A DNA stretch of 64,000 nt from Oikopleura dioica (Eukaryota; Animalia; Chordata): the NCBI GenBank assembly GCA_907165135.1, contig OU015567.1, forward strand, positions 6,200,001 to 6,264,000, in the 5' to 3' direction. Positions 36,569 through 46,500 of the stretch are shown here, in pieces. How positions within the stretch are numbered: the first letter of the stretch is position 1; every line of letters starts with the position of its first letter. Under the pieces are notes generated by a model. That model ran no database searches. It saw only the letters and a list, made by a program, of their open reading frames with translations, and had not been told where the DNA came from. The position numbers and the translations under genes were made by a program.

Positions 36569-41736
<5,168 letters not shown>

Positions 41737-43549
41737 CTAGCGGACGGTCAGCAGCACCCGAGTGCGTTGACTCCCGCTCCCGCTCCTGAAGGTTACTTGA
41801 GCTAGTTCTCTAGTCACCTTTTTCTCGAGCAATTTCGACGTCAATTCTCCGCTGCCTGGCTGCCTCGTTAAGACTCAATCTTCAATTACATTTGTGCTTT
41901 TGAAGTGTTCTATTACGTATTTCGTTTTTACCTTTGTATCAGACCACTAGCCACAACCTGAGATTATAATATTTTAATTCTAAATAATTTACTCACAAAC
42001 TTTTAAAAATAATAACTCACGTGAGCAACTCAAGTTTGAATGCAGTATGTAAATTTCAATTTCTTCCTCTTTTTTCATCCTTTCTCTCCGGAGATCCGGT
42101 GCTGTGTGATTTATCTTCAAACAACCCAAAAAGTGTTCGTTGAAAAATAAACATATCTTCTGTCAAAAAAAATATTACTCCGTAGAACACTACTTTCTTC
42201 CCGGACAAACAATTCTACCACTGTAATATCTACTGTAAATATCTGAAATGTAAAACAATTCAACAATTTTGAATAGTAGCAGCCAATAAATGGATGCTTT
42301 GTTCATATTTAAAGTAATAAAATATTTTGCCTAAAATTGAATCTTGCCTTGTTCATTTTTTTTTGCAGATATTATCAAATATCCCAGTTAGTGAAAAAAT
42401 AGCTTCAAAGACACACAAAATGTAAAAAAAATGAGTAAAAGCAGTAAGTAAAGGCAGACTGCCTCGACACGGATTTTTCCAGGTTCTAAGCTGGAATTTC
42501 CAATGCTTTCTTTTTTTTTTGTTAGCCAGAGTCTTGGTCGAATCAGCCTTGATGTCCCATCATCAGATGCAAAGATTCAATACAAAAGATTTCCATTTCT
42601 TTTCCCAGAGGCATTTTTCCCGTGTAGTTCTTTATACCTTCCTTGGAGTGTAAGGCTTAGATTCTTCTCATTCGGGAATGAATACCATTGGTCTCAGAAA
42701 GTATGACGAAAAGATTGGAGAGTCAAATATAATTATCTTCAATATTGATAGCTTCAAGGGGAAAGCCACACAAAGTGGGTCCTTCCCGATGCTAATTTCT
42801 GATTCATTCGACTGTCACTAAGTCTCACTGCGTCAGATTCAAATCTGCATCATAATCCGACTGGTACGTTTGAGCTGCGTTCACAGCTCATTACACTTAG
42901 CTGACATCCATTAGAACTTTTTATCACGTGCCAGGATCAAGCATCAATCAGCCCAAAGTGGCATGTTTGGATCAGCCGAGGCGGGAAAAGCATGGGCTTA
43001 CTCGATCTTATCGAGCCCGTTTCCGGAAACAGGAGCAGCCAGGAAGTCCCTACAGAGACGAACGAGTGACCTTAATTCTTTCCCAGGCCTAATTATTATC
43101 CAAATTTCGACTCGACTTTTTTAAAACGTAAAAACTTGAAATCCACAAAAAGGGAATCGGCGAAGGGTTTGGCGAGTTCTAATCCATCCGTTTTTGAGGA
43201 TTAATTTCCGCTCAAAGTAGGTGATAAGAGAAATTTTGAGTGAAGCTGGCGGTTGATGATGTTGCTCGCGATATTTAGGCTTCGTTTCCTTATCTTGCAC
43301 GTTGTGCCGCCTCCCGAGCAAGTGCTGTCAACACTCCAGAAAAAGAGCTCGAAAAGCTATTGACTGTAGTTTTCCCGGTGCCTAATGATATTTCATAAAC
43401 TAAAATTGTCATTTGATCATGAAAATCTCACTTTTTCCATCGATTTATAGCTATTTTTCTTAAGGGTATCAACATGATATCTTCCAAAGTGTTAAACGCA
43501 TCTTTGGTGGTGTTGGTGGTGCTATTCTTTCAGCCAATCAGGAGCGAGA

Positions 43550-46500
43550 TCATGCGATAAGATGCTAAGAGAGATAGTGCGCCGGAACAGATAGGGGGCG
43601 CTGTTCTGAAAAACCCTGCGCTAAGCCAATCAGTGAAACGTACTTCCGCCGCAGTACTTCCCTTTTCATCAGCAACTAAATCTGTTTGAATCTGTTTGAT
43701 TCCATGATCCTTTGGAGCTTCATCATTTGACCTCAAGGAGCATGGGGTCTCTCTGTTGTGTAGCAGTTTTAAGAGCGGAAGTTTTCATCGGAGGAAGGAA
43801 CTTTGTCACGTGATACCCATCGATAGTATGCACTTCCACTTCCGGTAGGGGCACTTCGCCGATCGAAATTTGAAAAGATCAGATATCAAACAGGCTACTT
43901 GAGGAGGGACCACTTAATTTTCTGAAGGTTGCATCCGCAACTAGAACTGTTCTACCAGAATTCGATCGGTTTCGCTATTTTTTCGAGCATGGCCTTTGCT
44001 GATTGTGATTATCGATAAGGTGGTGGAGGAGGAAATGAATTAGCGGCTTTCTGATAAGGTTGTGTCACACCATTACGGGCAGGTGCTCCTCGCGAGAATT
44101 CCAACTGATAACCGAAAAAAATGTCCCCAGCCACTTGACCATCCTCTGCTACTGATAACGACCCTGGACAGGAAGCACAATCATCTACAGACAGTTCTAT
44201 ACAGAGTACACAGAGTACCTTTCTTTTCAGAGCAGTTTCTTTTCGGCAACAAAGGAAAGGGCAAAATGTCGCGGATAGGTAAAACAACGGTGACTTCATC
44301 CGGCGCTCCTGTGATCGGCCGCGGAGGATAGGCTAGAATTCCGCCGTGGGGAATTTCTAACGTAATAAAGCACCGCTGATAAGCAGAAGCAGCAGTCAAG
44401 TAGTCAGAATCCGGTTCCTGCCAATTTCGCGCCAAACATAAAACCAAGCTCCATCCTGTTTCTACACCTGAAGGGGAAACATTTTTCTAGCGACGAAAGA
44501 GCCGCTTTTACAGGAAAAATGATGGTTCTTTCTCTTTTTCATTTTGGCTCATTTTCTATGGGAAATCAGATAATGCTGAGCCAGTGTTTCAGGAGCCGTT
44601 TTGGCAACAAAAATGTAGAGATATCACTCCGGAGCTGCTTCGCCGCGACTTCGGACCATCACGTGGTCCCTCTCGCAACCGCCAACCGCGGGAAAGCTTC
44701 TGTTATCAAACCAAACAAAATCGTTTTTTTTTTCTCCATTTGCGTAAATTTTAAAGATTTAACTAGCCAACATATAGGCTTATCACTAAAATAGTCAATA
44801 GAAGATCCTCCCTTAGGGCTTCTCTTGATTGAGGGGGCTCCTTAATTTTTGTAAAATTTAAAGCAGGTGCTAGGGCTAGATTCATGAGGTGCAATTTCGG
44901 GCGAAGGAGTCAAAATTTTGGAGAAATCTGGCGGCGCTTGGCACGCTGAGGAAGATAAGAAATGCCCGCAATGGTGGTTTAATTTTGGCGCAGCCGCCAC
45001 CACCAACTCCAAAGATAACACCAGAACATGTGTTTTATGAGAGGAAAGGAAAAACCCTTGTTCCCAAGCCATTACTACTCGTAAGTAGTTTTTCTCCGGT
45101 ACCCTTTTTTTTGCCCTTGTTGAGCCGCGGCTAAACACCCGCTGCGCCTTATCAGTAAACTGTTTAACTTAGGTGTGATTTCGGGCTTCTTTATCCATAC
45201 CGCCGCGCATGCCGCCCAAGTTTCCCTCCTCTCGAGCCCTATTTGAAAATATTTCCGCAAATGGAGATAACGCGGCCCACATAAATTGCTCTCCACTCTG
45301 GTGGAGACGGTGGTGTTTAGCTAACTGCCGAGAGTAAAGTACCATTTCCTATTTGGCCACTGAGATTTTATCGAAAAGAACAAACTTGACAAACAAGTTT
45401 CTTCGAGCCAGCCAACGAAGACGATTTTACTGTAGCTCAGCTTCAAGAAATGACGACTTTGCTAATTCTCGATTCTACGGTTAGATATTTTTGTTTTGCA
45501 TGCACTTTGATAAGCGCGTATAAAACAGAACTCCTCTTGATAAGTTTCTATAGCGGAAGGAACTTTTTGTTTTGGGACTTTCTTCAATTTTTTCCTTATC
45601 GTTCTTTAGCCTTTGTGATAAGGCGAAATGACCAAAGCTTTAGTCTCCCGCTGCGCTTATGACGCTAGAACTATTCGCATAAAAGATACTTTGCCTACCT
45701 CGGGTTAAAAATCCTTAGTTTAAAAAATGAATATCGGATATGTAAAAAATTTAAAATATTTAATCATTTCCGCGCTCTCTTTTCCAGCTCTGCCACTTCC
45801 GACAGGTCCTATTCCATTTTCCCAAAGCTATGATTATCGTCGACTCTATTCTTTAGGCGCTTTATCTTGCTTGTCATCGAAAACGCTAGAATCTAAAAAA
45901 AGAAAGAATGCGTGGACTGTGATTCAATCGCAATCGTGCGAGATTGAATTTGTACGAGTTGTTGAAGATAGCGTGGTTAGCTCAATTAGGAGGAGATAGG
46001 AGTTCTCGTCGTTATCGAATTGGGCGAAATCGGTGGAGATGGAGGATTTATCTTATTCCTCTAACAGCTATCAACGCTCGCCCCGCTATCTCCCCACGTC
46101 AGAACGAAAAGAACCTTCAGATTACGCGTCCAGGTCATTTATTTAGCGATGACCTCTTTCGCGAACACCCTTATCGTTCCTTGTTGATATCCTTTATCTG
46201 CGTAAACCGTCACGTAAAGAGAAGGGAACAGATAAAAAGAATGAACTTGTCGACTGATTTATTATTTAAGGGATTCGCTCGTGTGAACACTGAACATATG
46301 TACTTGCGGGGAACAAATGGGACGAAAAAAAACGGAAAAACGAACGCTCTTATCAATTTTTTATTTGGCGGTAAAGAGATACGGTGTCTAAAATTGAACT
46401 GATTGCTTAGAATGATTCATGAACTTGAGGAAAAACGGGACATTACAGTTCATTTTCTGACAAAGAAACTCTAGAATTGAAATGTCGTGAGAACGTTGTA

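Follow-up and report, generated by a model that had tools for sequence, protein, structure and literature searches.

The window analysed here is a 64,000-nucleotide stretch of the Oikopleura dioica contig OU015567.1 (positions 6,200,001 to 6,264,000 of the forward strand), and the gene of interest within it is, judged from its translated exons, a two-finger GATA transcription factor of the GATA1/2/3 class. The exons were searched individually for Pfam and solved-structure matches rather than as a joined protein. The features discussed below are as follows.

39732 to 39877, plus strand: exon encoding the N-terminal GATA zinc finger (translation; Pfam PF00320, E=4.8e-17)
40792 to 40917, plus strand: exon encoding the C-terminal GATA zinc finger (translation; Pfam PF00320, E=1e-17)
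41314 to 41733, plus strand: last coding exon, 140 codons, with a lysine-rich basic region and then a Pro/Ala/Ser-rich tail to S-[ST]-M-A-F-G
41734 to 41736, plus strand: first stop, TGA, putatively leaky (TGA in 11/11 distinct orthologues and in 4 more contigs)
41737 to 41747, plus strand: candidate readthrough context, CTAG followed by CGGACGG (conserved at the nucleotide level; together with the stop it makes up the 14-mer TGACTAGCGGACGG)
41737 to 41802, plus strand: putative readthrough extension, 22 codons (coding-type substitutions, in-frame length variation, G+C of 0.64 vs 0.35)
41803 to 41805, plus strand: second stop, TAG, end of the putative extended isoform (translation; conservation boundary in relatives)
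41806 to 42340, plus strand: 3' UTR with an approximate, inferred end (sister-lineage RNA coverage through the 42258-42340 bin and none past it)

The N-finger exon begins in phase 1 behind an AG acceptor and has a GT donor at its 3' side. An intron-less, cDNA-like contig of a related lineage (L007, protein P0005) shows exactly the same exon junctions. The best solved relatives of the C-finger were GATA-3 (3.6e-33) and GATA-1 (4.7e-30), both ahead of GATA-4. The lysine-rich basic region and the terminal M-A-F-G both lie within the exon 41314-41736, which is the last exon. In the GATA1/2/3 class the lysine-rich exon is the last one whereas GATA4/5/6 genes have extra 3' exons (PMC2857956), and because the lysine-rich exon is the last exon here as well, the gene has the GATA1/2/3-class arrangement. 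The genome from which the window comes has one copy of this gene end. The S-[ST]-M-A-F-G at the end of the last exon is conserved, and its M-A-F-G corresponds to the C-terminal motif of GATA1/2/3 proteins in other animals. Past the basic region the tail contains neither Lys nor Arg. The introns around the N-finger exon measure about 2.05 kb (37681-39731, inferred from an upstream open frame with a GT donor near 37680) and 0.9 kb (39878-40791), and the median intron of the O. dioica genome is 49 bp (PMC8008620). These long introns may hold regulatory DNA or inserted elements. Further downstream, AATAAA hexamers in the 3' UTR begin at 42146, 42285 and 42316.

Translated in the frame of 41314, the tail of the window's protein reads S-S-M-A-F-G and is ended by the TGA at 41734-41736. 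CTAG follows this stop directly (41737-41740) and opens a run of 22 sense codons up to the TAG at 41803-41805, which together would encode a peptide that begins with L-A-D-G and ends with E-G-Y-L-S. The earlier note had described this arrangement and had called the extension GC-rich like the tail upstream of it. Re-reading of the sequence and translation of the last exon showed that its coordinates and reading were correct, and the compositional claim held as well, with a G+C of 0.62 in the last 150 nt of the coding sequence and 0.64 in the extension. In the 200 nt past the second stop the G+C was 0.35, which places the step from 0.64 to 0.35 at the second stop and not at the first. Taken from a single sequence, this pattern is a lead and not evidence, because both of its elements are within chance. 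The 7-mer TGACTAG is not enriched in the window (3 seen vs 4.3 expected from shuffles), and at least 22 open codons are found at 40% of random window positions, so that the length of the extension alone says little. The pattern rises above chance because it is conserved in other lineages. One further property of the window sequence is that CTAGTCA at 41810-41816, five bases past the second stop, is the exact reverse complement of the TGACTAG at 41734-41740. A 7-bp stem formed by the two could enclose the entire extension, though it is probably a chance occurrence because it is missing in L001 and the other lineages.

Orthologues were collected by a word search with the 140-residue last exon as the query, which gave 11 strong matches to ORF fragments (52-89% identity) from marine metagenomes and run assemblies. 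Retrieval of the contigs provided 10 further distinct orthologous gene ends, or 11 distinct sequences including the window, and these were grouped by the similarity of their tail and extension. Group A is the O. dioica complex and holds the window and L001 (95% amino-acid identity), group B holds L002, L004 and L007 (81-88%), group C holds L008, L012 and L005 (79-87%) and group D holds L013, L014 and L015 (81-95%). The phylogenetic depth of the metagenome lineages is taken from their divergence only. Three closer relatives and one more contig (L046, L059, L139 and L115) were added by a scan of the JGI metagenome collection in which the stop position was a wildcard. Besides about 100 chance matches that lacked a GATA tail, the scan gave these four true tails, three of them near L001 and one matching L004, and all four carried TGA. 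GATA1/2/3-like tails were also found in outgroups, where they read M-V-H-A-M-G followed by TAA (L017) and M-V-H-A-L-G followed by TGA-G (L016), and nothing resembling the larvacean extension was seen after either of these two tails. As sampled, and going by these sequences, the extension is a feature of the larvacean group. In L016 (1803-1990) the TGA-G is followed by more than 60 open codons that are dissimilar to the larvacean extension and could reflect chance, an intron or something else.

The codon after M-A-F-G was TGA in all 11 distinct orthologues, and the second stop varied freely among TAG, TGA and TAA in the relatives with no preference. The nucleotide after the TGA was C in every orthologue; the first codon of the extension was CTA in 9/11 and CTG in 2/11, and the full CTAG was present in 8/11. 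Beyond this, the Ala codon after the Leu was GCG in 8/11, the next Asp codon was GAC in 11/11, and 7 distinct lineages shared the whole 14-mer TGACTAGCGGACGG without a difference. At fourfold-degenerate third positions the identity was only 0.16-0.46 for all pairs, the closest included, which means that synonymous sites are saturated and that the lineages are effectively independent at such sites. CTA is rare elsewhere in the alignment, being used for 2 of 55 codons in five other invariant Leu columns. The binomial probability of finding at least 9 CTA codons is about 6e-12 at this observed frequency and 1e-4 if the frequency is set to 0.25, and both values, which assume independence, are upper bounds on the significance. 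The check suggested in the earlier note, conservation of TGA-CTAG across lineages, came out positive, with TGA in the 11 orthologues and in 4 more contigs and CTAG in 8/11; the three members of clade D have CTGG or CTAC in place of CTAG. The extension of clade D is also short and poorly conserved, and its readthrough signal may be weaker or differently built.

The extension itself changes in the manner of a protein-coding sequence. The window and L001 both have 22 codons and can be compared without gaps, and they differ by 15 nucleotides in 66 nt. The changed codons comprise 7 synonymous and 3 non-synonymous ones, and the synonymous changes include switches between the Ser codons AGT and TCT and between the Leu codons TTG and CTC. 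When 15 changes were placed at random, 0 of 5000 placements gave 3 or fewer amino-acid changes without a stop (P<0.0002). A synonymous excess was also found for L002/L004 (P=0.004), L008/L012 (P=0.004), L008/L005 (P=0.02) and L002/L007 (P=0.036), with the caveat that gapped pairs were aligned via their proteins and that this biases the alignment towards amino-acid matches, which does not apply to the gap-free window/L001 pair. Two pairs did not follow this pattern, as L004/L007 had no synonymous excess (1 synonymous vs 5 non-synonymous, P=0.75) and that of L013/L014 was not significant (P=0.17). Among the sequences of the L001 group, comparison with L001 gave 6 codon differences at only 4 codon positions, 5 of them synonymous and 1 not. 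No indels were present in the extension of this group, and indels that are not multiples of three begin a few bases past the second stop. Across all groups the length of the extension ranges from 11 to 33 codons, and the length changes are always in frame. The earlier note had proposed a synonymous bias of the substitutions in the extension as a check and had named frameshifts or stops in relatives as the contrary outcome. The bias was found, most clearly between the window and L001, the indels were in frame only, and no frameshift or stop of this kind was seen among the orthologues examined.

Both ends of the predicted peptide are recognizable in relatives. The extension starts with L-A-D-G in 9/11 orthologues, with L-A-D-D in L005 and with L-P-D-G in L015, and the codons for this start carry the synonymous variants CTA/CTG, GCG/GCC and GGT/GGC. 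At the other end, groups B and C keep a C-terminal Q-P-(N)-F-T-S (Q-P-F-A-S in L012), which stands directly before the second stop in 5/6 of them, and the extension of the O. dioica complex ends with E-G-Y-L-S. In L005 (916-1014) the stop after F-T-S has become a sense codon and four more codons lead to a TGA; the extension of this lineage has 33 codons in total and an Ala/Thr-rich insertion mid-way. Amino-acid identity between the window and L001 was highest in frame 0 (19/22, vs 13/21 and 12/21 in the other frames). At the nucleotide level the extension is as conserved as the 90 nt of coding sequence before the first stop, and after the second stop the identity falls to a background of about 0.45-0.58, meaning that the drop in conservation falls at the second stop and not at the first.

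These observations have to be weighed against the reading in which the stop is used for ordinary termination only, with an open frame that exists by chance and, beside it, a conserved non-coding regulatory element, for instance a site bound by a protein or a miRNA. For one sequence the 7-mer and the 22-codon open stretch are within chance, which favours this reading. Conservation of the first 11 nucleotides past the stop exceeds what the encoded amino acids call for, as would be expected of an RNA element, and the two pairs without a synonymous excess (L004/L007 and L013/L014) are in line with it as well. However, such an element leaves unexplained the 7:3 synonymous excess with its multi-nucleotide Ser and Leu switches, and also the in-frame length changes between 11 and 33 codons. 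Nor does it predict that another conserved peptide motif would immediately precede the second stop or that amino-acid identity would be highest in frame 0, and conservation, indel type and G+C all shift at the second stop rather than the first. Ordinary termination beside a non-coding element is thus considered improbable, although it is the best of the alternatives to stop-codon readthrough.

RNA evidence came from three oligo-dT RNA-seq runs and one single-cell run that share their species label with the DNA sources that best match the window. Most of the reads were less than 90% identical to the window, their loose ends matched L059 and L139, and 26 letters that lie between the sides of one apparent joint matched L139; for these reasons the RNA is attributed to an L139-like sister cryptic lineage. 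The species label of these runs evidently covers deeply diverged cryptic lineages, and the reads are unsuitable for placing the transcript ends of the window strain. The sister-lineage mRNA runs from the last exon through the stop and the extension and includes about 500 nt of the 3' UTR. About 72 reads cross position 41730, none of the joints falls at the stop or close to it, and the mRNA of this lineage carries the stop and the extension unspliced. Among the base changes listed, none lies between 41730 and 41758, and there is no majority change at 41734-41757. Majority A-to-G editing at 41736 is excluded in the sister-lineage RNA. TGA-CTAG is likewise present in the cDNA-like contig L007. 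The RNA alignments contain apparent joints, one between 41597 and 41722 and three within the 3' UTR, which were considered as introns and rejected as alignment gaps, because their ends are not splice sites, other letters stand between their sides and they lie in diverged or indel-rich stretches.

This RNA bears directly on a second alternative, in which the UGA is recoded without near-cognate decoding, either through partial A-to-I editing of UGA to UGG or through removal of a short non-canonical intron. About 11% of O. dioica introns are non-GT/AG (PMC8008620), so an unusual intron would not be out of place in this genome. For editing, the window sequence can fold a local hairpin at 41739-41778 (z=-2.36), and low-level A-to-G change at 41736 would be compatible with the base changes listed, which are the stronger ones. 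However, the reads that span 41730-41761, from three runs, show neither a joint nor a majority A-to-G at 41736. The coding signature starts at the codon right after the TGA and for this reason leaves no room for an intron, and contiguous RNA combined with coding conservation from the very next codon excludes the non-canonical intron. The hairpin is not conserved, and the conserved CUAG is a known ribosomal readthrough context and not an editing or splice signal. Taken together, editing or splicing as the source of a longer product appears slightly less credible still than a non-coding element. The same structural result applies to a conserved stimulatory RNA structure, a candidate that was rejected on the grounds that the consensus structure of the alignment has only -1.2 kcal/mol and no compensatory pairs; the window hairpin, with its z=-2.36 relative to shuffles, is specific to the window lineage.

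The weakest alternative is that the UGA encodes selenocysteine and the GATA factor is a selenoprotein, which would also fit an in-frame TGA that is strictly conserved and flanked by coding conservation before and after it, but which was rejected as very improbable since searches of 41300-44000 and of 10 homologous loci with their 3' flanks gave no SECIS or relevant Rfam match at E up to 10, the wildcard scan found no lineage with Cys at the site, the site belongs to a disordered tail beyond the canonical GATA1/2/3 C-terminus where no redox motif is present, and selenocysteine insertion leaves the CUAG conservation unexplained.

The reading that best accounts for these data is programmed UGA-CUAG readthrough of the GATA1/2/3 stop, which we consider likely and which would give the gene a predicted second, longer protein. 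The stop, its 3' nucleotide context and, at the protein level, the extension are all conserved, and a longer protein becomes very probable because in about a dozen larvacean lineages the 22 codons change as protein-coding sequence does. The C-terminally extended GATA isoform that was proposed from the window alone is in this way supported, as a prediction, by the conservation of stop, context and extension. In the proposed mechanism, most ribosomes would terminate at the UGA at 41734-41736 and produce the canonical protein that ends with M-A-F-G. A fraction of ribosomes would instead insert a near-cognate amino acid at the UGA, since CUAG makes UGA leaky in animal cells, and by analogy with other systems the inserted residue would be Trp, Arg or Cys. 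These ribosomes would then continue for 22 codons to the UAG at 41803-41805 and yield an isoform with the conserved C-terminal extension. Both the occurrence and the rate of readthrough are inferred. Our best guess, drawn from analogy with the readthrough form of the vitamin D receptor, is that the extension would act on the C-terminal tail of the factor by modulating its activity, partners or stability.

Experiments have validated UGA-CUAG as the readthrough motif of OPRL1, OPRK1, AQP4, MAPK10 and MDH1 (PMC4132726). In OPRL1, OPRK1, AQP4 and MAPK10 the stop is always UGA, CUAG follows it and some further 3' nucleotides are conserved; 12 nt 3' of the stop are enough for readthrough and structure is not needed (PMC4132726). 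The efficiency is 1.5% for UGA-CUA alone and reaches about 31% for OPRL1, and conservation of the extension in the vertebrate readthrough genes concentrates near the C-terminus (PMC4132726). It should be noted that most human UGA-CUAG genes show no conserved extension (PMC4132726). A 2026 preprint describes the CUAG core as shared and the flanking determinants as gene-specific. Compared with this Loughran-type anatomy, the GATA case, in which readthrough is predicted from sequence, matches point by point. As in the vertebrate set (OPRL1, OPRK1, AQP4, MAPK10, MDH1 and LDHB), the stop is UGA throughout, the CUA(G) directly 3' of it shows conservation of the nucleotides themselves, further nucleotides within about 12 nt are partly conserved, no 3' RNA structure is required, and the extension is short (13-30 residues) with its amino-acid conservation concentrated near the C-terminus. 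There are differences as well. The present case concerns appendicularian tunicates and a GATA transcription factor, its extension is much more variable in length (11-33 codons), and one GATA clade has CUGG or CUAC. The LDHB and MDH1 extensions carry a peroxisomal signal, whereas the GATA extension has no recognizable targeting signal.

Two other systems offer partial parallels. VDRx is reported to be a C-terminally extended form of the human vitamin D receptor that arises by UGA readthrough and has an altered transcriptional response (PMC5868278). Like the GATA factor, it is a DNA-binding transcription factor in which UGA readthrough, predicted for GATA, leads to a C-terminal extension (PMC5868278). 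It belongs to another protein family, however, and is a primate- or mammal-level case. Viruses and retroelements that use UGA-CUA(G), such as alphaviruses at nsP3/nsP4, likewise rely on a leaky context to make a longer product as a fixed minor fraction (PMC4132726). Unlike these, the GATA gene is a cellular gene and its extension is short rather than a polymerase. Retroelement gag-pol junctions with UGA-CUAG were looked for in the same genome in 10 loci at the best RT matches, 8 ten-kb stretches at long RT frames and 30 of 68 CAATGACTAG sites. No such junction with long open frames on both sides was seen in these sampled loci, and a Retrotrans_gag search made for the same check had no match. 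Such junctions may nonetheless exist in the genome, as the sampled loci do not refute them.

Full-text literature searches brought up no account of readthrough for Oikopleura, for other tunicates or for any GATA factor. Conserved readthrough of cellular genes has been documented mainly in insects and vertebrates. We lean, by a small measure, towards the broader view that the appendicularian GATA1/2/3 readthrough isoform predates the split of the sampled lineages and is driven by UGA-CUAGCGGACGG, which is invariant at sites that are otherwise saturated. If this is true, no earlier recoding event would have been described in a tunicate or for a GATA factor, the vertebrate UGA-CUAG mechanism would be at least chordate-wide, and a developmental regulator would have two isoforms that differ in activity and are made in a fixed ratio. 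Confirmation of readthrough would show that the UGA-CUAG signal operates in the sister group of vertebrates, and a key developmental regulator would have to be given a second product in the gene models of O. dioica. The bases that stay invariant past CUAG would also become a compact system for asking how 3' nucleotides set readthrough efficiency, and since injection of O. dioica embryos is routine, the animal suits tests of such nucleotides.

A last observation concerns public protein records. Five metagenome proteins in the database (P0002, P0003, P0004, P0010 and P0011) read M-A-F-G and then W-L-A-D-G, that is, they write W at the TGA and continue into the extension. This is because the gene caller evidently chose genetic code 4 for eukaryotic contigs; the W-at-TGA calls come from the loci L002-L006, L014 and L015, and some of them pass further TGAs. 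It was this translation artefact that exposed the conserved extension.
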